DNA from: Selaginella moellendorffii
Lineage: Eukaryota; Plantae; Lycopodiophyta
Length of the DNA stretch: 64,000 bases
Direction: 5' to 3'
Assembly: GCF_000143415.4 (NCBI RefSeq)
Contig: NW_003314275.1
Span: 1-64,000, forward strand
In this document: positions 1-22,227 of the stretch, piece by piece
Layout of the letters: each line of letters begins with the position of its first letter
Position numbering within the stretch: the first letter of the stretch is position 1
Made by a program: the position numbers and the translations under genes
The notes under the pieces: generated by a model
Databases searched by the model: none
Told to the model about the DNA's origin: nothing
Seen by the model: the letters and a program-made list of their open reading frames with translations, nothing else

Positions 1-157
1 AAACCCTAAACCCTAGACCCTAAACCGTAAACCCTAAACCCTAAACCCTAAACCCTAAACCCTAAACCCTAAACCCTAAACCCTAAACCCTAAACCCTAA
101 ACCCTAAACCCTAAACCCTAAACCCTAAACCCTAAACCCTAAACCCTAAACCCTAAA
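1..157 (+). repeat. Terminal telomeric tract (CCCTAAA)n, C-strand of a left chromosome end
   Basis: About 22 CCCTAAA units from base 1, with variants CCCTAGA and CCGTAAA. Confidence 0.97.
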
Positions 158-359
158 CAGGTGATGGATGAAGCTCCCGCAGACACACTCCCCTGAGTGA
201 TCACGTGCTGGAGATGCCTCCCGAATCCCGGTTCGTTCCTGGTCATGGCTAAACTCGCTTTGCGAGCTTAGCCACATCTTTTACTACGCTTTGCAAGAGA
301 CGGAAGCATATGATTGCATCCTTCTTTGCGTAACCGATGACCTTCAGGGTCTGGCCGAT

Positions 360-1125
360 GGACTCTAGGTATGTCCCAGTCACCTCTGGTCGTCCCCCAC
401 CGGTCAACGCCCGGTCAACGCGCAGTCTACTGTCCAAACAGGAATATTCCCGAATATTCCCTGACAGTCAGATTGTTGACCGAGTCAACGAGGCCTACAC
501 CATTCGATTCTGCACCCCTTTCCAAGTTTGACAACGTTGGTCTCATCTCCTTACGATGGATACCACACCTTGGAAAGCTTGCGAATCTCATAATGATGCC
601 ATGCGACGACGTCGACGTCACACACGCCGACACCTCGCAGGAAAAGGACCTTTCTGCATGACCAAAAGACCTCGGGTACGTACCAGTCACTCCAGGCCAC
701 CTCCCTTTCGAGTCAACGCCCGGTCAACGCGGAGTCAACGGTCAGAACGGAATATTCCCCAATATTCCGACTGTATCCCTGTTGACCGAGTCAAAACGGC
801 ATATACCGTTGGATTCCGCTCTTCCTTCCGATCGTGAATATGTGAGTTTCAACTCTGAACTCCTCACACGATTCGTTGAAAAGCGTGTATTCCGTTAAAA
901 CGGTACCGCTCCTTCGACATCGGCGATGCACGCCGACAACTTGCGGGATGGCTCTCCCCTGCACCACCGCTGGACTTCGGGTATGTATGAGTGACCTCAG
1001 GCCCTCCACCATCCCAGTCCACACACGGTCAACGCGGGGACAACGGTCAACGACGGAATATTCCCAGAATATTCCCTGCAAAGTGGACCACGTTTTTCGC
1101 TGCCGGGTATGTACGAGTGACACAA
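360..1125 (+). promoter_or_regulatory. Three tandem subrepeats (~310-bp period) with W-box clusters (GGTCAA/TTGACC) and heat-shock-element-like arrays; also in units 2, 3, 6 and partly 4
   Basis: gGAAtaTTCccGAAtaTTCc at 441-460 is a perfect 4-pentamer HSE, with imperfect copies near 749 and 1056. GGTCAA at 402, 413, 722, 1027, 1045. Subrepeat starts near 364, 671, 976 and 1102. Confidence 0.5.
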
Positions 1126-1350
1126 GCATTGTGGACGTAACGCATGCATCATATCATGCCGCGTTTACAAGTTATCTTGTGTCAAAGGTATGTCACCCGC
1201 CGGCCAAACGCTTACTGTCTTCGGCAATTAGCCGAAGTCATTCTCCGCGACTACCACTGCTGTGGAGTAACCAACACCAGCTTTGCTACGTTCGCACCCT
1301 CGCGAGCCAACGCTGCCACGCCAGTTCGCATGGCCGCCACACGGACTCGC

Positions 1351-1376
1351 GCCACGTGACAGAGCCAAAATATAAG
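1351..1376 (+). promoter_or_regulatory. Putative core promoter of the PLE pseudo-LTR (G-box GCCACGTG and TATA-like TATAAG)
   Basis: GCCACGTG at 1351-1358 and TATAAG at 1371-1376, about 55 nt upstream of the hammerhead core. Confidence 0.4.
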
Positions 1377-1412
1377 TAGAGTCGGCACCGAGCTAGGGTT
1401 AGGGTAGACACT

Positions 1413-1470
1413 AGACGACTACACCCGGCTGATGAGTCCCAAAAAGGACGAAACCGGTCTCGGGTTGTCT
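1413..1470 (+). ncRNA. Type I minimal hammerhead ribozyme (PLE-type)
   Basis: Stem I ACCCGG/TCGGGT (extended by AGACG/TGTCT), CTGATGA at 1429-1435, stem II GTCC-caaaaa-GGAC, GAAA, palindromic mini stem III ACCGGT, GTC cleavage triplet at 1457-1459. Confidence 0.9.
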
Positions 1471-1829
1471 CTTGTCCTCTCCCTCGCTCACGAATGAATG
1501 AAAATTCATTCCCTTGCCTCCTCTACTTGCTCTCGATCACGCCGTTTCAACAACGGCACACGGAGAATGTGGATTGCACAAAGTGGTGCCGCGATCTCGC
1601 CGGATTGCAGCACCGCGGGGTGTCTTTGACCCTAAACGCCTAAACGCGCCTAAATCCTAAACTCTCTGCGGTTCAAAAGCATCCGAGCGGGCCTCACCAG
1701 CTTTGCTCGGTTGCAAAAGCACATCCCACGCACCAAGTAAGCTTAAGTTCTCACACTGTTTCTATTGTTTCCAGAAGAATTCAGTAAATTTGAACAACAA
1801 TCTACCAAAGTCAAACCTCTTTGCCAATG

Positions 1830-4800
1830 GCAGGCCAAGACAACTCCATACATGGCTCTGGGATAGGAGAAGCCAGCCACGATGCCCCTCACTCCCTGCG
1901 CACAGGTCTGGCACAGCAAGTCTCCAGGCCGGGCATTTGTGTTGGCCCTTGCGCGCTGCACCTCACCGCCAGGACGCCACAGAAATCCCTGCCTGGAGCT
2001 GCTAACCGCCACTAAGAGTCTGGGAGCTAGCTCGGCATCTCCACACAACAGTTTCTCTGGCGTCTCGGGTGGCCCAGCTCCTCTGACTCAGGTCCAGCAC
2101 AGCAAGTGCCCCACAAAGGCTTTTTGGCCGCCTCTGGTTGCTGCCTCGGCACCACCAAAGGATCTCCAAAAAGCCTAAGGGGATTGCTCCCTGCTGTTGA
2201 GAGCACGCGCCCCACCCAGACATCACCACAGAACTGTTGTGATCGACCAGAATCCGCCGTAGGAGACACAATTGCAACTGCAACTACAAATGCCCGCCTC
2301 TGCTCCTCCAGCATCCTCTCCACCGTCAGATCTCCCGATCTAACGGCCCACGTGGTCCAAGCCTCAATCGTAAAAAATTCTAAGTCCCAGCACTTAGATT
2401 TTTTAATGGGCTATGGAGGAGAAAGATGCAAGGAGCAGCCACGGCAGAGCATTCTGTCTTGAGCACGCCACAGCAGCAAGCCAACGGCAAGCCAAGACAA
2501 CCCCAAGCATGATTCTGGATTCAGAGAAACCAGCCACGATGCCCCTCTCTCCCCTCGCTAGGGTCTGGCACAGCAAGTCTCCAGGCCAGGCATTTGCGTT
2601 GGCCCCTGTGCGCCGCACTTCGCTGCCACAGCGCCACAAAAAATCCCTGCCCGGAGCCGCTCACCGCCACTAAGAGTCTGGGAGCTAGCTTGGATTCTCA
2701 ACACAGCAATCTTTTTGGTGTTTCCCGCGGCCCAGCTCCCCTGAATCGGGTCTGGCACAGCTAACTCCCCACAAAGGCTTTTTGCCCCTTTTGGTCCAGT
2801 GCCTTGGCACCACCAAGAGATCATCAAAAATGCCAAGGGAGCTGCTCCCTGCCACACAGAGCGCCCACCCCGCCCAGAGATCACCATAAAAACGCTGTGC
2901 TTCACCAAAATCTGCCATGGGAGAAGCCTTTGCAACAGCAATTGCAAAGGGCCACTCACGCTGCCCTCTCTTCCCTCCTCCACCATTGGATCATACAGAT
3001 CTAACGGCTCAAACGCTCAGCCTTTGAGTTGCCAAAAATTTCTAAGTCCTAGCACTTGGTTTTTGGCAATGGAGAGGAAGCTACGTGAGCATCGCAGCTA
3101 CGTCTTGAGCACGCCACGGCCCAAGTCACCACAGCCAGCTGCTCCAGCAGCAGCAGCAGCCGCCGACGCAGGCAGCACCAGCCACTGCAACAGCCCGCGG
3201 CCTGCCAACACCAGCAGCTGCCGCGGCTGCTGCCCCAGCCGGCCAGCCAGCAGTGCCACGGCCGGCCTCCAGCGACCGCCACAGCGAGCACTTGGGCCAG
3301 CACTCGCCGCCCAAAGCGCCAGCTCTGTGGCTAGCCGTGGCCCAGCCCGTTAGCACCGCGTCCCGGCCAGCCGCTGCTCAGCAGCACCACCAGCGCTGCC
3401 CAGCAGCGCCCTGCTGCACCAGGCACCTCTGCATGATGCTGCGCGCCGCCCAGCAGCGCCAAGCACCGCTGCACGCCGTTCAGGGCCGCCACGCGCCGCC
3501 CGGAGCTGCTGCGCCCTGCCTAGCGCCTCCCTGCACTGCCTGGTGCCAACAGCAAACCAAGAAAACTCCATACGTGACTCTGGGACAGGAGAAGCCAGCC
3601 ATGATGCCCCTCACTCCCTGCATACAGGTCTGGCACAGCAAGTCCCCAGGCCGGGCATTTCCGTAGGTCCCTGTGCGTGCTGCACCTCACCGCCAGGACG
3701 CCACAGAAATCCCTGCCTGGAGCTGCTAACCGCCACTAAGAGTCTGGGAGCTAGCTCGGCATCTCCACACAACAGCTTCTCTGACGTCTTGTGCGGCCCA
3801 GCCCCTCCGACTCAGGTCCGGCACAGCAAATGCCCCACAAAGGCTTTTTGGCCCCCCTTGGTTGCTGCCTCGGCACCACCAAGGGATCTCCAAAAATGCT
3901 AAGGGGATTGCTCCCTGCTGTTGAGAGCACCCACACCACCCAGACATCACCACAAAGCTGTTGTGATCCACTAGAATCTGCCGTGGGGGACACAATTGCA
4001 ACTGCAATTGCAAATGCCCACCTCTGCTCCTCCAGCATCCTCTCCACCGTCAGATCTCCCGATCTAACGGTCCACGTGGTCCAAGCCTGAATCGTAAAAA
4101 TTCTAAGTCCCAGCACTTAGAATTTTTTCTGGGCTATGGAGGAGAAAGATGCAAGGAGCAGCCACGGCAGGGCATTCTGTCTTGACCACGCCACAACATC
4201 AAGCCAGGACAACTCCAAGCATGGTTCTGGATTCAGAGAAACCAGCCATGTGCCCTTCTCTCCCCTCGCCAGGGTCTGGCACAGCAAGTCCCCAAGCCAG
4301 GCATTTGCGTTGGCCCCTGTGTGCCACACCTCGCTGCCACAGCGCCACAAAAAATCCCTGCCTGGAGCTGCTCACTGCCACTAAGAGTCTGGGAACTAGC
4401 TTGGCTTCTCGACACAACAATCTCTTTGGTGTTTCCTGCGGCCCAGCTCCCCTGAATCGTGTCTGGCATAGCAAACTCCCCACAAAGGCTTTTTGCCCCT
4501 TTTGGTCCAGTGCCTTGGCACCACCAAGAGATCATCAAAAATGCCAAGGGAGCTGCTCCCTACCACACAGAGCCCCAGAGATCACCATAGCAATTGCTGT
4601 GCCTCACCAAAATCCACCATGGGAGAAGCCTTTGCAACAACAACAGCCATTGCAAAGGCCGACTCACGCTCCCCTCTCCTCTCTCCTCCACCGTCGGATC
4701 GCACAAATCCAACGGCTCAAACGCTCAGCCTTTGAGTTGCCAGAAATTTCTAAGTCCTAGCACTTGGTTTTTGGCAATGGTAGAGGAAGCTACGGGAGCA

Positions 4801-6100
4801 TGGCCGCTGCGTCTTGAGCACGCCACAGCCCAGGCCACCACAGCCAGCTGCTCCAGCAGCAACAGCCGCTGACGCAGGCAGCGCCAGCCATCGCAGCAGC
4901 CCGCGGCTTGCGAACACCAACAGCTGCCGCGGCTGCTGCGCCAGCCGGCCAGCCAGCTGTGCCACGGCCGGCCTCCAGCGACCGCCACAGTGAGCACTTG
5001 GGCCAGCACTCGCCGCCCAAAGCGCCAGCTCTGTGGCTCGTCGTGGCCCAGCCCATCAGCACCGCGTCCCGGCCAGCCGCTGCCCAGCAGCACCACCAGC
5101 GCTGCCCAGCAGTGCTCCACCGCGCCAAGCACGACCGCACGCTGCTCAGGGCCGCCACGTGCTGCCCAGAGCCGCTGCGTGCTGCCTAGTGCCGCCCCGT
5201 GCCGCCCAGTGCTGCTCACGTGTGCCCAGCACCGCCCAGTGATGTGCTGTACCGCCAGCGACGCGCGGTACTGCACAGTGACGTGCGGCACTGCCCAGCG
5301 ACGCGCGGTACTGCACAGTGACGCACGGCACTGCCCAGCGACACGCAGTACTTCCAGAGACACGCGGTACAGTCCAGTGCCGCCCAGCGGCTCCAGGCCG
5401 GGCATTTACGTAGGCCCCTATGCGCTGCACCTCACTGCCAAGACGCCACAAAAATCCCTGCCTGGAGCCACTAAGAGTCTTGGAGCTAGCTTGGCATCTC
5501 CACACAACAGCTTTTCTGGCACCTGGTGCGGCCCAGCTCCCCCGACTCAGGTCCGGCATAGCAAATGCCCCACAAAGGCTTTTTGGCCCCCCTCGGCTGC
5601 TGCTTCGGCACCACCAAGGGATTTCCAAAAATGCTAAGGGGACTGCTCCCTGCTGTTGAGAGCACCCGTGCCACCCAGACATCACCACAAAGCTGCTGTG
5701 ATCTCTGGCACGATGCCCCTCACTCCCCTCGCACGGGTCTGGCACAGCATGTCTCCAGGCTGGGCATTCACACTGGCCTCTGCGCGCTGCGTTCTGCCAC
5801 CAGAGCGCCACAAAAGATCCCCACCTGGAGCTGCTCACGGCCACTAAGAGTTTGGGAGCTAGCTTGACATCTCCACTCTGCAGTCTTTTCGACGTCTAGC
5901 GCAGCCCAGCTCCCCTGACCTGGGTATGGCACAGCAAATCCCTCACAAAGGCTTTTTGCGCCCCTTTGGTATGTTGCCTTGGCACCACCAAAGGATCACC
6001 AAAGATGCCAATGGGAATGCTCCTTGCCACTCAGAGCACCCAAGCTGCCTAGACACTGCCACAACGCTGCCAAAAATCCAATCTGCCATGGATCCCCTGC
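1830..6100 (+). repeat. GC-rich complex satellite-like payload inside the PLE
   Basis: GCCACTAAGAGT-GGAGCTAGC motif recurs near 2008, 2666, 3732, 4377, 5467 and 5840; higher-order duplication ~1830-3560 vs ~3560-5190 (period ~1.72 kb); CAG/GCC-rich stretches. Confidence 0.85.
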
Positions 6101-6349
6101 AATCACTAGTGCTAGCACTGGCCCTGCAACTGCAGAGCCAAGCACTATGCCGATGGCACGGGCTCTCTCACCACCTCTGGTGCCAGATCCCTTGCAATCG
6201 CCACCCAGGCCAGCCCCTGCCACTGGAACAGAGCAGCGAGCCCTCTCGCCTTAACGCTCTCCAGGACCTGGCCCAGCGCAGCAGCCACCGTCACCTCTGC
6301 ACCTGGCTCTGCTCTGCGTGTCCATGGCACCACGCTCAACACTGTCCCC

Positions 6350-7033
6350 ACAGACTCGACGAGTGCCTCGACACAACCAACAAATCGCCCTTCCATCTAC
6401 GGAGGTACACGAGCAGGCCTTGAACGATGGCTCCGAGGATATGGCACGCTTCGTCCCTCGATCAAGATCACCTCGGTGATCCTGCTCGAGGAGTTGGATA
6501 TCCTCGATATCCACTTCTTCAAAGGCCCTCACTTTGAAGAGACACGCTGCCTCGACTCGTCCACGTTCCAGAAGCCCCTCAACGCCTACCAGTACCTCCC
6601 CTGGACGTCGGTTCACCCATGGCACCAGAAAGTGGCATTTATCCGCAGCGAGCTCCGGAGATACCTCCTCCGTGAGAGCACGGCCCATGGATCTCATGCC
6701 ATGCGCATGCGGTTCTACCACCGCCTCTGTGTCCGGGGACACCCGATCTCCTTCCTCCAACACTGCCTCTCTAGCATCTCCTCTGACCAGCGACATGAAG
6801 CTCTCCTTGCACGCTCGCGCCGCTCTAGCGACGCTTGTCGACGGACCCCCCTCGCCTTTAAGCTCCCCTACACGCTTCACAGCACGCAGCTAGGCTTGGG
6901 GGACATCCTAAACCCTAAACAGGTGATGGATGAAGCTCCCGCAGACACACTCCCCTGAGTGATCACGTGCTGGAGATGCCTCCCGAATCCCGGTTCGTTC
7001 CTGGTCATGGCTAAACTCGCTTTGCGAGCTTAG
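6350..7033 (+). pseudogene. PLE reverse transcriptase C-terminal fragment with the catalytic YTDD deleted
   Basis: Same sequence as 10350-11065 but with a 32-bp deletion between AGGTACAC direct repeats at ~6410. Confidence 0.85.
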
Positions 7034-8174
7034 CCACATCTTTTACTACGCTTTGCAAGAGACGGAAGCATATGATTGCATCCTTCTTTGCGTAACCGAT
7101 GACCTTCAGGGTCTGGCCGATGGACTCTAGGTATGTCCCAGTCACCTCTGGTCGTCCCCCACCGGTCAACGCCCGGTCAACGCGCAGTCTACTGTCCAAA
7201 CAGGAATATTCCCGAATATTCCCTGACAGTCAGATTGTTGACCGAGTCAACGAGGCCTACACCATTCGATTCTGCACCCCTTTCCAAGTTTGACAACGTT
7301 GGTCTCATCTCCTTACGATGGATACCACACCTTGGAAAGCTTGCGAATCTCATAATGATGCCATGCGACGACGTCGACGTCACACACGCCGACACCTCGC
7401 AGGAAAAGGACCTTTCTGCATGACCAAAAGACCTCGGGTACGTACCAGTCACTCCAGGCCACCTCCCTTTCGAGTCAACGCCCGGTCAACGCGGAGTCAA
7501 CGGTCAGAACGGAATATTCCCCAATATTCCGACTGTATCCCTGTTGACCGAGTCAAAACGGCATATACCGTTGGATTCCGCTCTTCCTTCCGATCGTGAA
7601 TATGTGAGTTTCAACTCTGAACTCCTCACACGATTCGTTGAAAAGCGTGTATTCCGTTAAAACGGTACCGCTCCTTCGACATCGGCGATGCACGCCGACA
7701 ACTTGCGGGATGGCTCTCCCCTGCACCACCGCTGGACTTCGGGTATGTATGAGTGACCTCAGGCCCTCCACCATCCCAGTCCACACACGGTCAACGCGGG
7801 GACAACGGTCAACGACGGAATATTCCCAGAATATTCCCTGCAAAGTGGACCACGTTTTTCGCTGCCGGGTATGTACGAGTGACACAAGCATTGTGGACGT
7901 AACGCATGCATCATATCATGCCGCGTTTACAAGTTATCTTGTGTCAAAGGTATGTCACCCGCCGGCCAAACGCTTACTGTCTTCGGCAATTAGCCGAAGT
8001 CATTCTCCGCGACTACCACTGCTGTGGAGTAACCAACACCAGCTTTGCTACGTTCGCACCCTCGCGAGCCAACGCTGCCACGCCAGTTCGCATGGCCGCC
8101 ACACGGACTCGCGCCACGTGACAGAGCCAAAATATAAGTAGAGTCGGCACCGAGCTAGGGTTAGGGTAGACACT

Positions 8175-8232
8175 AGACGACTACACCCGGCTGATGAGTC
8201 CCAAAAAGGACGAAACCGGTCTCGGGTTGTCT
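8175..8232 (+). ncRNA. Hammerhead ribozyme copy 2
   Basis: Identical to 1413-1470; CTGATGA at 8191. Confidence 0.9.
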
Positions 8233-8416
8233 CTTGTCCTCTCCCTCGCTCACGAATGAATGAAAATTCATTCCCTTGCCTCCTCTACTTGCTCTCGATC
8301 ACGCCGTTTCAACAACGGCACACGGAGAATGTGGATTGCACAAAGTGGTGCCGCGATCTCGCCGGATTGCAGCACCGCGGGGTGTCTTTGACCCTAAACG
8401 CCTAAACGCGCCTAAA

Positions 8417-8607
8417 CCCTAAACCCTAAACCCTAAACCCTAAACCCTAAACCCTAAACCCTAAACCCTAAAACCCTAAAACCCTAAACCTAAACCCTAA
8501 ACCCCTAAACCTAAACCCTAAACCCTAAACCCTAAACCCTAAACCCTAAACCCTAAACCCTAAACCCTAAACCCTAAACCCTAAAACCCTAAACCCTAAA
8601 CCCTAAA
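8417..8607 (+). repeat. Interstitial telomeric tract
   Basis: (CCCTAAA)n with single-base indel variants. Confidence 0.95.
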
Positions 8608-10349
8608 GCCTCACCAAAATCCACCATGGGAGAAGCCTTTGCAACAACAACAGCCATTGCAAAGGCCGCTCCCCTCTCCTCTCTCCTCCACCGTCGGATC
8701 GCACAAATCCAACGGCTCAAACGCTCAGCCTTTGAGTTGCCAGAAATTTCTAAGTCCTAGCACTTGGTTTTTGGCAATGGTAGAGGAAGCTACGGGAGCA
8801 TGGCCGCTGCGTCTTGAGCACGCCACGGCCCAGGCCACCACAGCCAGCTGCTCCAGCAGCAACAGCCGCTGACGCAGGCAGCGCCAGCCATCGCAGCAGC
8901 CCGCGGCTTGCGAACACCAACAGCTGCCGCGGCTGCTGCGCCAGCCAGCCAGCCAGCTGTGCCACGGCCGGCCTCCAGCGACCGCCACAGTGAGCACTTG
9001 GGCCAGCACTCGCCGCCCAAAGCGCCAGCTCTGTGGCTCGTCGTGGCCCAGCCCGTCAGCACCGCGTCCCGGCCAGCCGCTGCCCAGCAGCACCACCAGC
9101 GCTGCCCAGCAGTGCTCCACTGCGCCAAGCACGACCGCACGCTGCTCAGGGCCGCCACGTGCTGCCCAGAGCCGCTGCGTGCTGCCTAGTGCCGCCCCGT
9201 GCTGCCCAGTGCTGCTCACGTGTGCCCAGCACCGCCCAGCGATGTGCTGTACTGCCAGCGACGCGCGGTACTGCACAGTGACGTGCGGCACTGCCCAGCG
9301 ACGCGCGGTACTGCACAGTGACGCACGGCACTGCCCAGCGACACGCAGTACTTCCAGAGACACGCGGTACAGTCCAGTGCCGCCCAGCGGCTCCAGGCCG
9401 GGCATTTACGTAGGCCCCTATGCGCTGCACCTCACTGCCAAGACGCCACAAAAATCCCTGCCTGGAGCCACTAAGAGTCTTGGAGCTAGCTTGGCATCTC
9501 CACACAACAGCTTTTCTGGCACCTGGTGCGGCCCAGCTCCCCCGACTCAGGTCCAGCATAGCAAATGCCCCACAAAGGCTTTTTGGCCCCCCTCGGCTGC
9601 TGCTTCGGCACCACCAAGGGATTTCCAAAAATGCTAAGGGGACTGCTCCCTGCTGTTGAGAGCACCCGTGCCACCCAGACATCACCACAAAGCTGCTGTG
9701 ATCTCTGGCACGATGCCCCTCACTCCCCTCGCACGGGTCTGGCACAGCATGTCTCCAGGCTGGGCATTCACACTGGCCTCTGCGTGCTGCGTTCTGCCAC
9801 CAGAGCGCCACAAAAGATCCCCACCTGGAGCTGCTCACGGCCACTAAGAGTTTGGGAGCTAGCTTGACATCTCCACTCTGCAGTCTTTTCGACGTCTAGC
9901 GCAGCCCAGCTCCCCTGACCTGGGTATGGCACAGCAAATCCCTCACAAAGGCTTTTTGCGCCCCTTTGGTATGTTGCCTTGGCACCACCAAAGGATCACC
10001 AAAGATGCCAATGGGAATGCTCCTTGCCACTCAGAGCACCCAAGCTGCCTAGACATTGCCACAACGCTGCCAAAAATCCAATCTGCCATGGATCCCCTGC
10101 AATCACTAGTGCTAGCACTGGCCCTGCAACTGCAGAGCCAAGCACTATGCCGATGGCACGGGCTCTCTCACCACCCCTGGTGCCAGATCCCTTGCAATCG
10201 CCACCCAGGCCAGCCCCTGCCACTGGAACAGAGCAGCGAGCCCTCTCGCCTTAACGCTCTCCAGGACCTGGCCCAGCGCAGCAGCCACCGTCACCTCTGC
10301 ACCTGGCTCTGCTCTGCGTGTCCATGGCACCACGCTCAACACTGTCCCC

Positions 10350-11065
10350 ACAGACTCGACGAGTGCCTCGACACAACCAACAAATCGCCCTTCCATCTAC
10401 GGAGGTACACAGATGACGGAGTGAGCACTTGGACAGGTACACGAGCAGGCCTTGAACGATGGCTCCGAGGATATGGCACGCTTCGTCCCTCGATCAAGAT
10501 CACCTCGGTGATCCTGCTCGAGGAGTTGGATATCCTCGATATCCACTTCTTCAAAGGCCCTCACTTTGAAGAGACACGCTGCCTCGACTCGTCCACGTTC
10601 CAGAAGCCCCTCAACGCCTACCAGTACCTCCCCTGGACGTCGGTTCACCCATGGCACCAGAAAGTGGCATTTATCCGCAGCGAGCTCCGGAGATACCTCC
10701 TCCTTGAGAGCACGGCCCATGGATTCCATGCCATGCGCATGCGGTTCTACCACCGCCTCTGTGTCCGGGGACACCCGATCTCCTTCCTCCAACACTGCCT
10801 CTCTAGCATCTCCTCTGACCAGCGACATGAAGCTCTCCTTGCACGCTCGCGCCGCTCTAGCGACGCTTGTCGACGGACCCCCCTCGCCTTTAAGCTCCCC
10901 TACACGCTTCACAGCACGCAGCTAGGCTTGGGGGACATCCTAAACCCTAAACAGGTGATGGATGAAGCTCCCGCAGACACACTCCCCTGAGTGATCACGT
11001 GCTGGAGATGCCTCCCGAATCCCGGTTCGTTCCTGGTCAGGGCTAAACTCGCTTTGCGAGCTTAG
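10350..11065 (+). pseudogene. Penelope-like RT, motif C through thumb/linker; N-terminal half absent; no GIY-YIG
   Basis: RRYTDDG..WTG..LRPSIKIT..LDILDI..FQKPLNAYQYLPWTSVHPWHQKVAFIRSELRRY..RGHP..LAFKLPY; after TGA (10988-10990) the same frame continues VITCWRCLPNPGSFLVRAKLALRA*, resembling the PLE linker motif. Confidence 0.85.
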
Positions 11066-12206
11066 CCACATCTTTTACTACGCTTTGCAAGAGACGGAAG
11101 CATATGATTGCATCCTTCTCTGCGTAACCGATGACCTTCAAGGTCTGGCCGATGGACTCTAGGTATGTCCCAGTCACCTCTGGTCGTCCCCCACCGGTCA
11201 ACGCCCGGTCAACGCGCAGTCTACTGTCCAAACAGGAATATTCCCGAATATTCCCTGACAGTCAGATTGTTGACCGAGTCAACGAGGCCTACACCATTCG
11301 ATTCTGCACCCCTTTCCAAGTTTGACTACGTTGGTCTCATCTCCTTACGATGGATACCACACCTTGGAAAGCTTGCGAATCTCATAATGATGCCATGCGA
11401 CGACGTCGACGTCACACACGCCGACACCTCGCAGGAAAAGGACCTTTCTGCATGACCAAAAGACCTCGGGTACGTACCAGTCACTCCAGGCCACCTCCCT
11501 TTCGAGTCAACGCCCGGTCAACGCGGAGTCAACGGTCAGAACGGAATATTCCCCAATATTCCGACTGTATCCCTGTTGACCGAGTCAAAACGGCATATAC
11601 CGTTGGATTCCGCTCTTCCTTCCGATCGTGAATATGTGAGTTTCAACTCTGAACTCCTCACACGATTCGTTGAAAAGCGTGTATTCCGTTAAAACGGTAC
11701 CGCTCCTTCGACATCGGCGATGCACGCCGACAACTCGCGGGATGGCTCTCCCCTGCACCACCGCTGGACTTCGGGTATGTATGAGTGACCTCAGGCCCTC
11801 CACCATCCCAGTCCACACACGGTCAACGCGGGGTCAACGGTCAACGACGGAATATTCCCAGAATATTCCCTGCAAAGTGGACCACGTTTTTCGCCGCCGG
11901 GTATGTACGAGTGACACAAGCATTGTGGACGTAACGCATGCATCATATCATGCCGCGTTTACAAGTTATCTTGTGTCAAAGGTATGTCACCCGCCGGCCA
12001 AACGCTTACTGTCTTCGGCAATTAGCCGAAGTCATTCTCCGCGACTACCACTGCTGTGGAGTAACCAACACCAGCTTTGCTACGTTCGCACCCTCGCGAG
12101 CCAACGCTGCCACGCCACTTCGCATGGCCGCCACACGGACTCGCGCCACGTGACAGAGCCAAAATATAAGTAGAGTCGGCACCGAGCTAGGGTTAGGGTA
12201 GACACT

Positions 12207-12264
12207 AGACGACTACACCCGGCTGATGAGTCCCAAAAAGGACGAAACCGGTCTCGGGTTGTCT
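12207..12264 (+). ncRNA. Hammerhead ribozyme copy 3
   Basis: CTGATGA at 12223, identical core. Confidence 0.9.
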
Positions 12265-12455
12265 CTTGTCCTCTCCCTCGCTCACGAATGAATGAAAATT
12301 CATTCCCTCGCCTCCTCTACTTGCTCTCGATCACGCCGTTTCGACAACGGCACACGGAGAATGTGGATTGCACAAAGTGGTGCCGCGACCTCGCCGGATT
12401 GCAGCACCGCGGGGTGTCTTTGACCCTAAACGCCTAAACGCGCCTAAATCCTAAA

Positions 12456-12580
12456 CCCTAAACCCTAAACCCTAAACCCTAAACCCTAAACCCTAAACCC
12501 TAAACCTAAACCCTAAACCCTAAACCCTAAACCCTAAACCCTAAACCCTAAACCCTAAACCCTAAACCCTAAACCCTAAA
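12456..12580 (+). repeat. Interstitial telomeric tract
   Basis: (CCCTAAA)n. Confidence 0.95.
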
Positions 12581-13411
12581 CCTTCCGATCGTGAATATGT
12601 GAGTTTCAACTCTGAACTCCTCACACGATTCGTTGAAAAGCGTGTATTCCGTTAAAACGGTACCGCTCCTTCGACATCGGCGATGCACGCCGACAACTCG
12701 CGGGATGGCTCTCCCCTGCACCACCGCTGGACTTCGGGTATGTATGAGTGACCTCAGGCCCTCCACCATCCCAGTCCACACACGGTCAACGCGGGGTCAA
12801 CGGTCAACGACGGAATATTCCCAGAATATTCCCTGCAAAGTGGACCACGTTTTTCGCCGCCGGGTATGTACGAGTGACACAAGCATTGTGGACGTAACGC
12901 ATGCATCATATCATGCCGCGTTTACAAGTTATCTTGTGTCAAAGGTATGTCACCCGCCGGCCAAACGCTTACTGTCTTCGGCAATTAGCCGAAGTCATTC
13001 TCCGCGACTACCACTGCTGTGGAGTAACCAACACCAGCTTTGCTACGTTCGCACCCTCGCGAGCCAACGCTGCCACGCCAGTTCGCATGGCCGCCACACG
13101 GACTCGCGCCACGTGACAGAGCCAAAATATAAGTAGAGTCGGCACCGAGCTAGGGTTAGGGTAGACACTAGACGACTACACCCGGCTGATGAGTCCCAAA
13201 AAGGACGAAACCGGTCTCGGGTTGTCTCTTGTCCTCTCCCTCGCTCACGAATGAATGAAAATTCATTCCCTCGCCTCCTCTACTTGCTCTCGATCACGCC
13301 GTTTCGACAACGGCACACGGAGAATGTGGATTGCACAAAGTGGTGCCGCGACCTCGCCGGATTGCAGCACCGCGGGGTGTCTTTGACCCTAAACGCCTAA
13401 ACGCGCCTAAA
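12581..13411 (+). mobile_element. PLE unit 4, 5'-truncated
   Basis: Starts at the equivalent of ~824 (CCTTCCGATC) and has the same 3' seed. Confidence 0.88.
13170..13227 (+). ncRNA. Hammerhead ribozyme copy 4
   Basis: CTGATGA at 13186, identical core. Confidence 0.9.
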
Positions 13412-13448
13412 CCCTAAACCCTAAACCCTAAACCCTAAACCCTAAACC
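13412..13448 (+). repeat. Short telomeric tract
   Basis: About 5 CCCTAAA units. Confidence 0.9.
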
Positions 13449-13449
13449 G

Positions 13450-13542
13450 GTGGATTGCACAAAGTGGTGCTGCAATCTCGCCGGATTGCAGCACCGCGGG
13501 GTGTCTTTGACCCTAAACGCCTAAACGCGCCTAAATCCTAAA
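13450..13542 (+). mobile_element. PLE unit 5, ~93-bp 3' tail only
   Basis: Matches 1569-1661 with two substitutions. Confidence 0.88.
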
Positions 13543-13608
13543 CCCTAAACCCTAAACCCTAAACCCTAAACCCTAAACCCTAAACCCTAAAACCCTAAAC
13601 CCTAAACC
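13543..13608 (+). repeat. Short telomeric tract
   Basis: (CCCTAAA)n followed by GGTTTTAGGG. Confidence 0.9.
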
Positions 13609-13617
13609 GGTTTTAGG

Positions 13618-15936
13618 GCCAGGCACTATGCCGATGGCACGGGCTCTCTCACCACCTCTGGTGCCGGATCCCTTGCAATCGCCACCCAGGCCAGCCCCTG
13701 CCACTGGAACAGAGCAGCGAGCCCTCTCGCCTTAACGCTCTCCAGGACCTGGCCCAGCGCAGCAACCACCGTCACCTCTGCACCTGGCTCTGCTCTGCGT
13801 GTCCATGGCACCACGCTCAACACTGTCCCCACAGACTCGACGAGTGCCTCGACACAACCAACAAATCGCCCTTCCATCTACGGAGGCACACAGATGACGG
13901 AGTGAGCACTTGGACAGGTACACGAGCAGGCCTTGAACGATGGCTCCGAGGATATGGCACGCTTCGTCCCTCGATCAAGATCACCTCGGTGATCCTGCTC
14001 GAGGAGTTGGATATCCTCGATATCCACTTCTTCAAAGGCCCTCACTTTGAAGAGACACGCTGCCTCGACTCGTCCACGTTCCAGAAGCCCCTCAACGCCT
14101 ACCAGTACCTCCCCTGGACGTCGGTTCACCCATGGCACCAGAAAGTGGCATTTATCCGCAGCGAGCTCCGGAGATACCTCCTCCGTGAGAGCACGGCCCA
14201 TGGATTCCATGCCATGCGCATGCGGTTCTACCACCGCCTCTGTGTCCAGGGACACCCGATCTCCTTCCTCCAACACTGCCTCTCTAGCATCTCCTCTGAC
14301 CAGCGACATGAAGCTCTCCTTGCACGCTCGCGCCGCTCTAGCGACGCTTGTCGACGGACCCCCCTCGCCTTTAAGCTCCCCTACACGCTGCACAGCACGC
14401 AGCTAGGCTTGGGGGACATCCTAAACCCTAAACAGGTGATGGATGAAGCTCCCGCAGACACACTCCCCTGAGTGATCACGTGCTGGAGATGCCTCCCGAA
14501 CCCCGGTTCGTTCCTGGTCAGGGCTAAACTCGCTTTGCGAGCTTAGCCACATCTTTTACTACGCTTTGCAAGAGACGGAAGCATATGATTGCATCCTTCT
14601 CTGCGTAACCAATGACCTTCAGGGTCTGGCCGATGGACTCTAGGTATGTCCCAGTCACCTCTGGTCGTCCCCCACCGGTCAACGCCCGGTCAACGCGCAG
14701 TCTACTGTCCAAACAGGAATATTCCCGAATATTCCCTGACAGTCAGATTGTTGACCGAGTCAACGAGGCCTACACCATTCGATTCTGCACCCCTTTCCAA
14801 GTTTGACTACGTTGGTCTCATCTCCTTACGATGGATACCACACCTTGGAAAGCTTGCGAATCTCATAATGATGCCATGCGACGACGTCGACGTCACACAC
14901 GCCGACACCTCGCAGGAAAAGGACCTTTCTGCATGACCAAAAGACCTCGGGTACGTACCAGTCACTCCAGGCCACCTCCCTTTCGAGTCAACGCCCGGTC
15001 AACGCGGAGTCAACGGTCAGAACGGAATATTCCCCAATATTCCGACTGTATCCCTGTTGACCGAGTAAAAACGGCATATACCGTTGGATTCCGCTCTTCC
15101 TTCTGATCGTGAATATGTGAGTTTCAACTCTGAACTCCTCACACGATTCGTTGAAAAGCGTGTATTCCGTTAAAACGGTACCGCTCCTTCGACATCGGCG
15201 ATGCACGCCGACAACTCGCGGGATGGCTCTCCCCTGCACCACCGCTGGACTTCTGGTATGTATGAGTGACCTCAGGAGCCCCACCATCCCAGTCCACACA
15301 CGGTCAACGCGGGGTCAACGGTCAACGACGGAATATTCCCAGAATATTCCCTGCAAAGTGGACCACGTTTTTCGCCGCCGGGTACGTACAAGTGACACAA
15401 GCATTGTGGACGTAACGCATGCATCATATCATGCCGCGTTTACAAGTTATCTTGTGTCAAAGGTATGTCACCCGCCGGCCAAACGCTTACTGTCTTCGGC
15501 AATTAGCCGAAGTCATTCTCCGCGACTACCACTGCTGTGGAGTAACCAACACCAGCTTTGCTACGTTCGCACCCTCGCGAGCCAACGCTGCCACGCCACT
15601 TCGCATGGCCGCCACACGGACTCGCGCCACGTGACAGAGCCAAAATATAAGTAGAGTCGGCACCGAGCTAGGGTTAGGGTAGACACTAGACGACTACACC
15701 CGGCTGATGAGTCCCAAAAAGGACGAAACCGGTCTCGGGTTGTCTCTTGTCCTCTCCCTCGCTCACGAATGAATGAAAATTCATTCCCTCGCCTCCTCTA
15801 CTTGCTCTCGATCACGCCGTTTCGACAACGGCACACGGAGAATGTGGATTGCACAAAGTGGTGCCGCGATCTCGCCGGATTGCAGCACCGCGGGGTGTCT
15901 TTGACCCTAAACGCCTAAACGCGCCTAAATCCTAAA
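13618..15936 (+). mobile_element. PLE unit 6, 5'-truncated; RT fragment ~13830-14546 (HTDD variant)
   Basis: Starts at the equivalent of ~6137; ORF 13902-14471; same 3' seed. Confidence 0.88.
15688..15745 (+). ncRNA. Hammerhead ribozyme copy 5
   Basis: CTGATGA at 15704, identical core. Confidence 0.9.
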
Positions 15937-16073
15937 CCCTAAACCCTAAAACCGGCTAAACCCTAAACCCTAAACCCTAAACCCTAAACCTAAACCCTAA
16001 ACCCTAAACCCTAAACCCTAAACCCTAAACCCTAAACCCTAAACCCTAAACCCTAAATCCTAAACCCTAAACC
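15937..16073 (+). repeat. Interstitial telomeric tract capping the LINE
   Basis: (CCCTAAA)n with an ACCGGCTAAA variant. Confidence 0.95.
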
Positions 16074-16074
16074 A

Positions 16075-17502
16075 GTTGAAGCCTTCCTTGAGGAGGAGCA
16101 CGCCCTGCCAGACAAGAGAACAGAGTCTCGGGCGTACCAGCACCAGGAGGTTGACACCCCGGAGCGAGTGGCAAAAGCCCAGTCGAGAGTGAGGAAGACT
16201 CGGGGCTGCGGAAAGGTGGTAGAAGCGCTGCACTCCTCGGACGGGAACAGTGATGCTAACAAGGAGTACACCTCACATAAAGTGAACGAGGGAACACATG
16301 GTCAGGCCGAAGAGCACAAGGTGGCAGCAGTAGGGGAAGGTGGAAGTGACTTGGTCCACGACGACACGAGAGGAAAGGCCGTCCCTGTCAAGCTGGCTGA
16401 GACTCTGCAAAGAGCAGTAGCAGAGAAGGAAGAGGAACTCCGCAAGAAGGCACTGATTGCTGTTTTCAGGGGGAAGTTCCCAACAGGTCGCATGGCTAAC
16501 GATTGGATCAATGCAACGCTGGGCCAGGGAATCCTCATGAAGAAGATGCTGCCGCATGGGAAGGGCTGCTACACAGTTGTCTTTGAGACAGAGGAGGCAC
16601 GGTCTCAGGCGGAGGCCATGCATGGCCTCATTGATGAGAATTGGGCGGTGTCATTCCACCCATGGATCCCAAGGTTCACCGCAGAGGACCAGGCTCGTCT
16701 CAAGGGCGGGAGCTTTCCAGTGAACATTGCATTGTGGGACGTTCCCATGGAAATGCGGATCACACCGGTGATACAGGAGCTGGTTGAAGGAAGTATTGGC
16801 CAGATAGCGGCCGGCCTCGACACTGTAGAAGCAGAGGGTGTGCTAGGTCCCATCCGTCTCAAAGTTTTCGTGTCAGCCCCGGCTGAAATCCCGACAGAGA
16901 TCGCAGTGCTGGGCCAGTATATCAGGATCCAAACGGAGAACTCAGAACCTAGATGCAACTTTTGCCAGTGCGCTGGACACCGGGAGGAGGCCTGCTCAGT
17001 CAAGCGGAACAGGTTGGCATCCCAGAAGCCGTTTGAGTTACCTGCAGAGCAGGAGCGGATCTTGAAGGCACGCCCTCCGGACCAAGCTCCCCACATTCGC
17101 TTCCCGGTCGCCCCACCACTCTTGGGCTCATCCTCACAGCCCAAACTGTTCGAGGGACCTATTACGGATGTCGAAGGAGATGGCTTCCAGCCGGTCCTCC
17201 CTCGAACAGTAGGAATGGCGGTCAGGTGGATTCCCCCTAAGCGGGAATTAAGTCCCACAGAGGCGGGAGACTGGCTGATGTGCCGCGGGAACACAGCCTT
17301 CCCAGAGGTTGTCACTATTGGAGACTACCACACACGCATGGAGAGTGCTATCACTGAGTGGACGGGCTTTGCGAAGTACACTGTCCGAGGCTTCTCCTGG
17401 ACGAAGCACAGGGGGAAGATGACTGCGGTGTGGACCATCTCCACAGAATGGAGGGCGAGACCCCGTAACTCCTCACTTTCTTGGAAGTACGTGGCTCCAT
17501 GA
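16075..17502 (+). CDS. LINE ORF1 (DUF4283/RRM-like region + CCHC zinc knuckle), 5'-incomplete
   Basis: Frame is open back to the telomere junction; GCYTVVFETEE..FHPWIPRF; CNFCQCAGHREEAC; stop overlaps the ORF2 start as ATGA (17499-17502). Confidence 0.85.
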   Translation, partial: VEAFLEEEHALPDKRTESRAYQHQEVDTPERVAKAQSRVRKTRGCGKVVEALHSSDGNSDANKEYTSHKVNEGTHGQAEEHKVAAVGEGGSDLVHDDTRGKAVPVKLAETLQRAVAEKEEELRKKALIAVFRGKFPTGRMANDWINATLGQGILMKKMLPHGKGCYTVVFETEEARSQAEAMHGLIDENWAVSFHPWIPRFTAEDQARLKGGSFPVNIALWDVPMEMRITPVIQELVEGSIGQIAAGLDTVEAEGVLGPIRLKVFVSAPAEIPTEIAVLGQYIRIQTENSEPRCNFCQCAGHREEACSVKRNRLASQKPFELPAEQERILKARPPDQAPHIRFPVAPPLLGSSSQPKLFEGPITDVEGDGFQPVLPRTVGMAVRWIPPKRELSPTEAGDWLMCRGNTAFPEVVTIGDYHTRMESAITEWTGFAKYTVRGFSWTKHRGKMTAVWTISTEWRARPRNSSLSWKYVAP

Positions 17503-20500
17503 CAACTCTCACGCTCGTCACCTGGAACTGCCGGGGACTCAGCTGGACCGGCAGTCGACTCAACAAAAGGGCGCAGCTCAAGTCCCACATCCGAGAGATC
17601 AGCTTAGAAGGAGATATCGACATCCTATGCTTGCAAGAGCACAAAATGACTGTGGCCCCAGACTACACCTTTGGAATGAGGGGACGGCTCTGGTGGAACC
17701 CGGCCACGCAAGCAGTGGCCAGACCAGGAGGGGGCACAGCAGTGGTAGTCTCAACCAAATGGTCTGCTCAGGTACGAAACCACCTTGTTCTCGTCCCAGG
17801 AAAGGCTCAATTGCTTGTCCTTCACCTCCACTTTGGACGGGTGGGGATAATCAACGTCTATGCACCAACGAAGAAAGGGAGACGTGCAGAATTCTGGCTG
17901 AGTGTGTTACAGTCTGCCCAGGGGCAAGCAGATGAATGGCTGGTCCTGGGAGATTTCAACATGGTCGAGGACGTCTGTGATCGCAGGGGTATGCAGGAAA
18001 CAATTCAGCCACGTGAACAGAAGCAGTGGAGTCAGCTCATGGACATACTGGGGCTCATGGACCTCCAGCATGCTGCGGGATTCGCACCTCATGCTCACCC
18101 TTTTACAAGGCGACAGACAGTATCCTCCCAGTCGAGACTGGACCGGATTTACGCCTCGTCTCGCATACGGCAGGATGGGGGAAGCCTAAAAACGTGGCTG
18201 GGATTTGCCTCCTTCTCAGATCACGACCCCCTCAGATGCGTGATCCAGCTCCAAAGGGACAAAGGGACAGCGGTCCAGCGATCAATCACTAGAGCCACGC
18301 TGCGAGACCCAGTGGCAATTGGGCTTATACACGACGCTCTTGCGCAGAACAAGCTGGGACTGATCCCTGTGCTCTTGTCTTGCTCACAGAAGCTCCGGGC
18401 GCGCCAGAAGGATCTCAAAGGGGTGGTGATGAAGGACCTTAGACTGGCCAGGAAGAAGGTCGCAGCTGCACACAGGATGTTGCTGAACACGCAAGATGAG
18501 CTCAAGTGGCAAACAATACTGGATGAACGTGAAGCCGAGCTACGTGACATGGAGTACGCTGCATGGAGCAAGGGCGTTCGGGCCATGGAAGATGGATGGG
18601 CCCTGAATGAACGCCTTCTCAACAAGGCTTTCTTTAGGGGAATCAGGCCAGTGAAGGACTCTCCTCCCATTCTAGGACTGAAGCACAGTGACGGGCGAGT
18701 CATCGAGGACCAACAGGGGATGCAACAGCTCGCCCAGGAGTTTTACCAACTTCTATATACGGCCCAGCAGTGGACTCCAGAGAGGGAAAGGGCGGCGGTG
18801 GAAGTGCTTGCGTCCCTTCCCCAGCGAGTCCCCCATGAGTGGCACGACTCACTGAAGACGGACTTCACACTGGAGGAGCTTCGGGAAGCGCTCGGGAAGC
18901 TCAGCAACGACAAGCAGCCAGGTATCGATGGCCTCTTGCCCATTTTCTTCGAGGAGCACTGGGAGACCATAGGCCCGCTGCTGCTACAAGCATGGTGGGA
19001 TGCTCAACGTGATGGGACCTTGCCTCGCGAGATCCTTGAGGGCCAGATTGCGCTTATTCCAAAGAGGGGGGACCTGCAGGAGCTGAAGAATTGGAGGCCA
19101 ATCACCATGCTCAACACGTCCTACAAGGTCTATGCCAAAGCAATGACCCTCAAGCTCCAAGCTGTCATGCCGCTGATCATCCGGGAGCAGCAGACAGGGT
19201 TTGTTCCAGGGCGGCAAATCGCAGAAAACATCTGGACGTACCTGCTGGCTCAGAGATGGGCAGAGATCTCTAACCAACAAACTGCAGCATGGCTTTTGGA
19301 CTTCGAGAAGGCCTACGATCGGGTGGACTGGAGGTTCCTAGAGGAGTGCATGAACACGATCGGCATCCCGAGAGAGATGGTCACTAGGATCTCGTTACTA
19401 TACCGAGGAGCCACAAGCAGAGTCACAATCAATGGCGAGACGGGACCGAGTTTCCAGCTGGGACGTTCAATACGCCAAGGGTGTCCACTAGCACCCTATC
19501 TTTTTCTGATTGTGGCTGAGGCCCTGGGCACGTTTCTAGCGGAAGGCGGACGCATTAAAGGACTCACACTGCCGGCTGCGAGACAGCAACTTCCGGGAAC
19601 CACAAGGGTGTCTCGGGAACTCCTTGATGGTGCTTTTGCGGACGACACTGCCTTGTTCCTACTTGCGACTAAGGAGAACATGGATGCAGCTAAGAAGGCG
19701 CTGGAGACGTTCAACCTCGCGGCTGGTGCAGCAATTAACTGGAACAAATCAGTGGGCATAAATTGGGGGCAACCAGGCATCGAATCTTGGGGGCAGGACA
19801 TTGGCTTCCAGTGGCTCAAACCAGGAGAAGACGCTAGGTACCTGGGGATCCAGGTTGGTACTCGGTTCAGTGCAGCACTTCAGGATGACACCTTGCTCCG
19901 ACGGGTACGAACGTCAATCCAGAAGTGGGCTCCCCGGAAACTCGGCTTGCCAGCGAGAGTGGTAGTCGCTAGGAGCATCATTCTGCCTGGCATCTGGTAC
20001 CACCTCTCCATCTGGCCTGTTCCAGAACGCACTCTTAGAAAGGTACGCACGATGGTCCGTCAGTATTTGTGGCGGGGCGCTCTGGTCACAGGGAGGAGCA
20101 TGGCCAAGGTCGCGTGGCAATCTACAGCACGTCCGCGAGTCTTGGGAGGACTTGGAGTAATCGATCCGAGTGACATGGCGAAGGCGCTACGGTACAAAAT
20201 CCTCCTCATGGGCCTTCAACCAGGTAATCAACCTTGGAGACTCATGTTTAGGCAGAACTTGTTGGCAATCCGGCCCAAGCACAACACTGCAAGACCGTGG
20301 GAAGAAGATCCACGTTGGCTCTTTGCTGAGGGGCCGAAGCAAGTAGTCAAGGGCGGCACTCTAGTCCAGGGGCTTCTCCGGTTATGGAGCGCGTTTCCAG
20401 TCAGTAGGGAATTGCCAGGGCGAGCGGAGGACTGGCTGAACCAGCCCCTGTTCTTCAACGACCTCTTCAAACTGGATGATAGGACATTGGGCAGGGAGGA

Positions 20501-22001: not shown

Positions 22002-22109
22002 GTCTAGCTGCGGCATATGAGGATCACGTAGAGTAGCTCATGGAGAGGGCGGCACGCCCATTTTTTGTATTAGTCCCATTGGGACATGGGGAATGTACAT
22101 ACACGTTCA

Positions 22110-22173
22110 GCGATCTCGCCGGATTGCAGCACCGCGGGGTGTCTTTGACCCTAAACGCCTAAACGCGCCTAAA
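22110..22173 (+). mobile_element. 64-bp PLE 3' tail fused to the LINE 3' UTR
   Basis: GCGATCTCGCCGGATTGCAGCACCGCGGGGTGTCTTTGACCCTAAACGCCTAAACGCGCCTAAA, identical to 1591-1654. Confidence 0.92.
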
Positions 22174-22227
22174 CCCTAAACCCTAAACCCTAAACCCTAA
22201 ACCGGTAAACCCTAAACCCTAAACCCA
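22174..22227 (+). repeat. Innermost telomeric tract
   Basis: (CCCTAAA)n with an ACCGGTAAA variant. Confidence 0.92.

Follow-up and report, generated by a model that had tools for sequence, protein, structure and literature searches.

A probable pseudo-long-terminal-repeat form of a non-autonomous, hammerhead-bearing Penelope-like element at a Selaginella moellendorffii chromosome end

How does a retroelement that attaches to telomeres come to stand in seamless tandem with a second, partial copy of itself? The question is raised by the left end of contig NW_003314275.1 of Selaginella moellendorffii (assembly GCF_000143415.4), of which we analyzed positions 1 to 64,000 (here, the window). The two outermost units (units 1 and 2) of an array of related copies are joined there with no telomere repeats between them. 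On the evidence below, they probably represent the pseudo-long-terminal-repeat (pseudo-LTR) form of a Selaginella Penelope-like element (PLE) that is non-autonomous, bears a hammerhead ribozyme, attaches to telomeres, and lacks an endonuclease.

Unit coordinates were obtained by self-BLAST and ungapped comparison of the first 16 kb of the window (Table 1), where a single element is present in six copies that all lie on the + strand. The C-rich telomeric strand runs 5' to 3' inward, and the chromosome end is therefore the left side of the window. In addition to the terminal telomere tract, there are six internal ones; units 2 to 6 are each followed directly by 62 to 220 bp of (CCCTAAA)n. All units share a tail, ending ...GACCCTAAACGCCTAAACGCGCCTAAA, and all of the tails point inward. 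Unit 2 alone appears to be full length. A reverse-complement telomere-repeat tail set on a telomere tract, together with 5' truncation, a single orientation, and inward 3' ends, is the arrangement that defines telomere-attaching PLEs, and the orientation of the array is as expected if a G-rich telomere overhang had primed on the C-strand-like 3' tail.

Table 1. Features of the array, its flanking telomere tracts, and the adjacent elements (window positions)
Feature	Position	Strand	Evidence and remarks
Terminal telomere tract (CCCTAAA)n	1..158	+	TRF period 7, 22.6 copies; sequence
Unit 1	159-1661	+	Equals the last 1.5 kb of unit 2
Match of unit 1 to unit 2	145-1628 versus 6907-8390	+	BLAST, 100%; left edge ambiguous over 145-158
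Type I hammerhead of unit 1	1423..1465	+	RF00163, 40.5 bits, E 7.8e-07; HH9-type extended helix I; predicted cut after C1459
Unit 1 3' tail, degenerate C-strand telomere repeats (priming seed)	1629..1661	+	Ends TCCTAAA and abuts unit 2 directly; units 2 to 6 end likewise
Unit 2	1662-8416	+	Whole unit, 6.76 kb, sole copy apparently full length; self-BLAST, list of open reading frames, Pfam, tblastn
Non-coding array of diverged ~330- to 650-bp repeats (76 to 89% identical)	1822..6070	+	BLAST self-matches, TRF; no Pfam domain in its open reading frames
20-bp microsatellite-like repeats	5141-5383	+	TRF
PLE reverse transcriptase remnant, from after the catalytic motif through the thumb	6395..7018	+	tblastn with P0001, residues 369-576, 59% identity, E 3e-71; phmmer
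32-bp deletion removing YTDD in unit 2	~6402	+	Alignment; lies between 8-bp direct repeats AGGTACAC
Internal telomere-like 13-mer CCTAAACCCTAAA	6907..6919	+	Sequence, protein alignment; codes LNPK in the reverse transcriptase remnant
Three ~300-bp repeats, putative promoter	7117..7840 (355-1080 in unit 1; also in units 3, 4, and 6)	+	Pattern counts versus shuffles, BLAST
Type I hammerhead of unit 2	8185..8227	+	RF00163, 40.5 bits; HH9 alignment, helix III without a loop; predicted cut after C8221
Unit 2 structured 3' tail, hairpins and degenerate telomere repeats	8353..8416	+	Fold z = -4.4
Older telomere tract, priming site of unit 2	8417..8611	+	TRF; sequence
Older 5'-truncated units 3 to 6, telomere tract after each	8608..16073	+	BLAST, mismatch matrix, junction contexts
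Unit 3	8608-12448	+	Begins at unit 2 coordinate 4601
Unit 4	12581-13411	+	Begins at unit 2 coordinate 7586
Unit 5	13450-13535	+	Begins at unit 2 coordinate 8331
Unit 6	13615-15929	+	Begins at unit 2 coordinate 6134
L1-type LINE copy (APE endonuclease, reverse transcriptase, zf-RVT)	16073-22230		Pfam; open reading frame 17481-22001 intact
Second L1-type LINE copy	22228-24303		5' truncated at a different point than the first

The unit 1/unit 2 boundary (1629-1671) reads ...GCGCCTAAATCCTAAA, the tail, followed at 1661/1662 by CTCTCTGCGG, with no telomere tract, microhomology, or filler, as an initial annotation of this DNA had pointed out for the missing tract. Each of the remaining six unit junctions of the array contains 62 to 220 bp of (CCCTAAA)n. 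Unit 2 is thus preceded seamlessly and in direct orientation by the 5'-truncated unit 1, i.e., the layout of a pseudo-LTR. Partial tandems in the form of hammerhead-bearing pseudo-LTRs are typical of PLEs (PMC8557442).

An exact alignment of 158-1654 with 6920-8416 had been called for in the initial annotation; we obtained 0 mismatches over 1,496 nt (159-1654 versus 6921-8416). The identity continues through the ambiguous positions 145-158, and the first mismatch is T1655 versus C8417. All four diagnostic alleles ascribed to units 1 and 2 were recovered: position 246 is T in unit 1 and G in units 3 and 6, while units 3, 4, and 6 differ at 942 (T/C), 1040 (A/T), and 1549 (A/G). Units 3 and 4, however, differ at only 1 of 831 sites despite the 160 bp of telomere between them, which marks them as clearly separate, independent additions. 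At that rate, ~1.8 differences would be expected in 1,496 nt, with a probability of ~0.17 of observing none. Given this near-identity, the absence of differences between units 1 and 2 is not exceptional and does not prove a single event, and we rejected it as proof of a single template molecule. The greater-than-unit product is indeed seamless and internally identical, as had been claimed, but its identity does not discriminate. To judge from these comparisons, consecutive units evidently came from one source, with little time between them.

A search of Rfam gave + strand matches to RF00163 (40.5 bits; gathering score, 34) at 1423, 8185, 12217, 13180, and 15698. A type I hammerhead above the gathering score therefore lies next to the tail in all five units long enough to hold one, in agreement with the one ribozyme per unit seen earlier. 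The HH9/Schistosoma type can be aligned with the core (CUGAUGA, GAAA, and GUC), with loop 2 (CAAAAA), and with helix I, which is extended and contains an internal loop. Predicted cuts follow GUC at 1459/1460 and 8221/8222; their spacing is the 6,762 nt proposed for a ribozyme-to-ribozyme monomer. The unit 1 cut is 170 nt upstream of the start of the seed and 202 nt from the end of the tail, which matches the earlier estimate of ~200 nt. Helix III consists of the palindrome ACCGGU only, without a loop, and according to folding, its closure in a monomer is sterically impossible. Hammerheads of this loopless build are considered to need dimerization for activity (PMC4209133), and the dimer-dependent cleavage suggested for this element is plausible.

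The five units long enough for a ribozyme were copied straight across the cut site, and none of the units starts at UCGGGU: in unit 2 coordinates, units 1, 3, 4, 5, and 6 have their 5' ends at 6921, 4601, 7586, 8331, and 6134, respectively, and the cut is at 8222. The copied RNA was thus uncut, or re-joined, at the 3' ribozyme; a dimer-only architecture fits reverse transcription across intact cut sites. In a weak-match Rfam search of 1-8700 for a second ribozyme that would define an RNA 3' end at 1661, hammerheads were the only ribozymes found, and two microRNA matches fell far below their gathering scores.

Two features of the hammerhead surroundings are recorded here. A G-strand-like CTAGGGTTAGGGTAG is located just upstream of the hammerhead (1391-1405 and 8153-8167). 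When 8160-8416 is folded to minimum energy (z = -4.4), UUAGGGU is paired with the seed ACCCUAA in the tail, a pairing that encloses the ribozyme and tail in one domain and might mask the priming seed.

The descent of the element is indicated by its reverse transcriptase (RT) remnant. The 354-amino-acid (aa) open reading frame (ORF) of unit 3, which reads ...RRYTDDGV..., matched 2,368 proteins in an exhaustive phmmer search, from residue ~145 onward only. The best match was a 580-aa S. moellendorffii protein, XP_024523476 (59% identity; E = 7e-72; its residues 346-554). In the alignment, this protein and its relatives carry KPADKN, DVxSLYPSIP, GTAMG, and RYIDD, which we take to be the Penelope-like RT motif set. 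The nearest atlas clusters were rotifer and animal DUF8422/HTH_animal/RVT_1 families, i.e., a PLE architecture. With nine PLE-type proteins as tblastn queries, units 2, 3, and 6 contained the C-terminal third of the RT only (~210 to 230 aa, from the catalytic motif through the thumb), and the N-terminal ~345 residues were found nowhere in the window. The YTDD motif deleted from unit 2 is kept in units 3 and 6. Among 19 ORFs of the element (+ strand, units 2 and 3), Pfam detected 0 domains and neither a GIY-YIG nor any other endonuclease. P0001 had no sequence match in the Protein Data Bank, and two metagenome scans, with the 5' end of unit 2 and with the ribozyme core, gave no matches.

With the C-terminal third of the RT only and with YTDD lost from unit 2, the element cannot copy itself, and the repeat array of unit 2 is decayed. 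By its sequence, it is a non-autonomous derivative of the endonuclease-deficient, telomere-attaching PLEs (Coprina/Athena type) and not an intact member of that group. The earlier description of the element as retrozyme-like stands in part: it is non-autonomous and has no functional protein, the RT being truncated and, in unit 2, without YTDD, but its unit (6,762 nt from cut to cut, in 1.2 copies) is not the small unit of ~170 to 1,100 nt of retrozymes.

The older units are 5' truncated, and telomerase re-capped each of them. For units 1 and 2, the features above suggest the following course of events. An RT supplied in trans would have laid down unit 2 and, after it, unit 1 in uninterrupted cDNA synthesis, reading the template beyond one unit length with no telomerase step between the two units. 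Later, the distal copy would have been eroded or aborted and then healed by telomerase at an internal 13-nt motif. Continuous synthesis of some kind is, in our judgment, highly probable.

The outer boundary bears on the last of these steps. Outside the telomere tracts, CCTAAACCCTAAA occurs only at 6907, 10939, and 14420 (once per unit; 0 expected by chance), and the ORF of the RT remnant ends 10 codons after LNPKQ. The outer end of unit 1 meets the terminal telomere exactly on this 13-mer, where a random truncation point would fall ~13 times in 6,750. A boundary at this exact position implies that the distal copy was most likely longer once and that 1.2 units is a minimum. Most likely, the copy was cut back or aborted, and telomerase then extended from the 13-nt seed.

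The tails provide a further indication of how the copies were primed. Units 3, 5, and 6 share the tail T found at 1655 of unit 1, whereas C is present in units 2 and 4 and in the adjacent long interspersed nuclear element (LINE). An RNA ending ...GCGCCUAAAUCCUAAA would account for both variants: a primer paired over the last 6 nt would leave the T, and one paired over 13 nt, with one G-U wobble, would leave its own C. Because the T of unit 1 stands directly before unit 2, the whole tail of unit 1 would have been copied without a telomere primer.

Among the telomere tracts, TAAACCGG occurs three times (13443-13450, 13603-13610, and 22198-22205), a count that is not significant by itself (1.2 expected). 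At units 5 and 6, CCGG separates the 5' end from the telomere repeats, and it is present again in the tract at 22202. TAAACCGG may correspond to what telomerase adds first in healing an end that is non-telomeric.

The sequence upstream of the ribozyme may indicate what a partial upstream copy contributes. Within 1.3 kb, there were 22 matches to the W-box-like CGGTCAACG versus 0.26 expected from shuffles. The ~300-bp repeats hold heat-shock-element-like GAAnnTTC arrays (GAATATTCCCGAATATTC), with 4 matches to GAAnnTTCnnGAAnnTTC versus 0 expected, and a TATA-like AATATAAG is present at 1367/~8129, ~55 nt upstream of the ribozyme. From these motifs, we infer that the region looks like a stress-responsive promoter in the pseudo-LTR. 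With a promoter in this position, a copy would depend for its transcription on a partial copy upstream of it, which would account for the extra copy. The unit downstream would be driven from that copy, in the manner of Penelope, Chlamys-3, and Drosophila HeT-A. Transcription in Penelope and Chlamys-3 starts inside the pseudo-LTR (PMC8557442), and the LTRs of retrozymes also hold a promoter (NbRZ1, PMC12029980).

The ~300-bp repeats also hold GGTATGT motifs that resemble 5' splice sites. A candidate intron-like stretch of 38 nt (1727-1764), with GTAAGC...TTTCCAG ends, lies 65 nt into unit 2, near the pseudo-LTR/body boundary; Penelope and Chlamys-3 have an intron in the 5' untranslated region at the corresponding position.

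As to the form that continuous synthesis took, we consider a jump, end to end, from one linear RNA to another of the same source to be possible but tentative, a read-through transcript of a tandem donor to be more doubtful, and a ribozyme-cut monomer serving as a covalent or nicked circle to be rather unlikely. In the nicked form, helix I would hold the cut monomer while the RT jumps from U1460 to C8221. The two-RNA jump, the tandem transcript, the ligated circle, and the nicked monomer held by helix I would leave the same DNA, whose sequence cannot choose among the four. If transcription started in the pseudo-LTR near the ribozyme, the linear RNA of a 1.2-unit donor would be without 159-1400 upstream of the body, which would favor a circle, a longer concatemer, or a jump.

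In the initial annotation, it was argued that full-length copying from the seed needs a circle or an uncleaved tandem transcript, and this logic is sound given a seed so near the 5' end of the cut RNA (170 to 202 nt). A circle was then put forward to explain the greater-than-unit product: both hammerheads would cut a tandem transcript, the 6,762-nt monomer would be ligated, the overhang would prime on the seed, and the RT would circle more than once (rolling-circle reverse transcription). Besides the cut-to-cut length, this proposal gains from helix I, which would hold the ends together, from the dimer-type palindrome of helix III, and from a primer that could pair over CCUAAAUCCUAAA with one G-U wobble, which may explain C8417 versus T1655. 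Circular templates have been published for PLEs (PMC4209133), and circles have been shown for retrozymes (PMC4918200, PMC7229834), but known hammerhead circles measure ~170 to 1,100 nt, and 6.8 kb is far larger. The 0 differences in 1,496 nt between units 1 and 2 fit a circle, yet the independent units 3 and 4 match this identity. A monomer that is nicked and left unligated, or an RT that jumps from one RNA to another, yields identical DNA. Moreover, a circle needs a donor that already bears the 1661/1662 junction, so that it propagates this junction and cannot create it. A circle is thus not required for the product, for which three other routes serve equally, and it leaves the origin of the junction unexplained; we consider a covalent circle as the template unlikely.

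Units 1 and 2 might also be two separate additions, with a second RNA from the same source copied onto the bare 5' end of unit 2 before telomerase capped it, the RT either staying bound (a template jump) or engaging anew without telomere pairing. End-to-end template jumping is established for R2-type RTs. The complete tail at the junction, including T1655 as in units 3, 5, and 6, is what a whole RNA 3' end (...UCCUAAA) would be expected to leave; the lack of microhomology and filler agrees with this, as does the near-identity of the adjacent, independent units 3 and 4. Against such additions, 1662 would have to be a true RNA 5' end, whereas other PLEs start transcription inside the pseudo-LTR, upstream of 1662 (PMC8557442), and all six other array junctions have at least 62 bp of telomere. 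We regard this alternative as conceivable, although short of probable. The perfect repeat of 1.5 kb, terminal as it is in the sequence, could, finally, stem from misassembly, unequal exchange, or break-induced replication between copies; assemblers err at perfect terminal repeats, and recombination at chromosome ends is common. However, recombination in the array would leave a telomere tract at the tail rather than join the tail to a 5' end, the difference at 1655 between the two tails fits a copied RNA end, and partial tandems are normal for PLEs. An artefact or DNA-level event is therefore very unlikely.

Our preferred reading remains that units 1 and 2 form a PLE pseudo-LTR, and several points weigh against it. 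There is only one apparently full-length copy and one seamless junction in the window. Any transcription start, ribozyme activity, or RNA 3' end considered here is putative, and the candidate promoter is a set of motif matches. As for a mobilizing RT, the closest PLE protein is just 59% identical, and a tail-sharing L1-type LINE adjoins the array. The terminal 1.5-kb perfect repeat is compatible with an assembly error.

Several known systems resemble this locus. Drosophila HeT-A forms a telomeric array in which the 3' end of a unit is thought to promote the next unit inward ("promoting in tandem"); HeT-A, however, belongs to the non-LTR elements, has oligo(A) tails, and contains no ribozyme, and the likeness lies in a promoter role that the motifs only suggest here. 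Endonuclease-deficient telomere-associated PLEs (Coprina/Athena) have been reported for S. moellendorffii (Gladyshev and Arkhipova 2007, as cited in PMC8557442 and PMC4209133). As summarized in those two papers, they share with the present element head-to-tail 5'-truncated copies among telomere repeats, a reverse-complement telomere tail, a hammerhead adjoining that tail, PLE-type RT sequence, and the lack of an endonuclease. Compared with that account, the present element is without the N-terminal two-thirds of the RT (and, in unit 2, the catalytic motif) and carries non-coding internal repeats over 4.2 kb, and the nearest annotated PLE protein of Selaginella shares just 59% identity with its RT remnant. 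Cervera and de la Peña (2014, PMC4209133) described hammerheads in the pseudo-LTRs of Selaginella PLEs and proposed a circular RNA template for PLE tandems. Those pseudo-LTRs likewise have a full copy after a truncated direct copy and one type I hammerhead per repeat, whereas the present tandem is at a live chromosome end with its outer edge probably healed at an internal telomere-like motif; it brings no new evidence for a circle.

Animal non-LTR retrozymes represent non-autonomous PLE derivatives thought to use PLE RTs (PMC7229834; bioRxiv 10.64898/2026.07.22.740005) and, like the present element, have one dimer-type type I hammerhead per unit. They are non-coding units of a few hundred nucleotides in multicopy tandems with demonstrated circular RNAs; the present unit, seen as genomic DNA, is 6.76 kb long in 1.2 copies, is targeted to telomeres in a plant, and retains an RT remnant. 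Plant LTR retrozymes (PMC4918200) are also non-autonomous plant elements with hammerheads in terminal repeats that hold a promoter (NbRZ1, PMC12029980), but their hammerheads are of type III, their LTRs are true ones accompanied by a primer-binding site and a polypurine tract, and Gypsy elements mobilize them; the present element shares none of these traits.

Both the layout and the circle hypothesis were thus already published (2014, PMC4209133), and the locus alone adds no new principle. New here are the loss of a working RT, the boundary on the 13-mer, the copying across intact ribozymes, and the 1 difference in 831 sites between units 3 and 4. The locus offers a clean and very young test case (a live chromosome end, zero differences, an exact junction, and a dimer-type ribozyme) for the old open question of how PLEs regain an upstream repeat with each jump, and it bears on a link between PLEs, telomerase, and ribozyme-bearing circular RNAs. 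It is improbable that a 6.8-kb ribozyme-bounded RNA of an RT-less PLE derivative served as an endless telomere-primed template, as a covalent circle or one nicked and held by helix I. If it did, every new chromosome-end copy would have its promoter, with the heat-shock and W-box motifs of a stress response, restored upstream of the copy's own ribozyme. The element would then rank as the first type I "giant retrozyme" of a plant and would directly support the circle model proposed in 2014 for the formation of pseudo-LTRs.

Proximal to the array, two L1-type LINE copies follow, and telomere repeats directly cap the 5' side of both. The 3' end of the LINE carries the last 64 to 72 nt of the element's tail (22110-22173; by BLAST, 22110-22181 is 98.6% identical to 1591-1662); the tail-bearing copy is the complete one and is again bounded by telomere repeats. 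The upstream half of the PLE tail was absent at both LINE 5' junctions. The LINE copies look like chromosome-end additions of a LINE-plus-tail chimeric RNA rather than insertions made in place within a PLE tail, and it is possible that the LINE's RT mobilizes the element. The idea that the element is a tail-sharing partner of the LINE, in the manner of a short interspersed nuclear element, was considered unproven and dropped, since the RT remnant points to descent from PLEs.

Farther inward, many arrays of a 12-nt repeat (GGACTCGATCTC and variants; periods of 12, 24, 35, and 48) occur on both strands over 30500-61000. They recur over the proximal 35 kb and are probably part of a repeated LTR-retroelement or satellite sequence.

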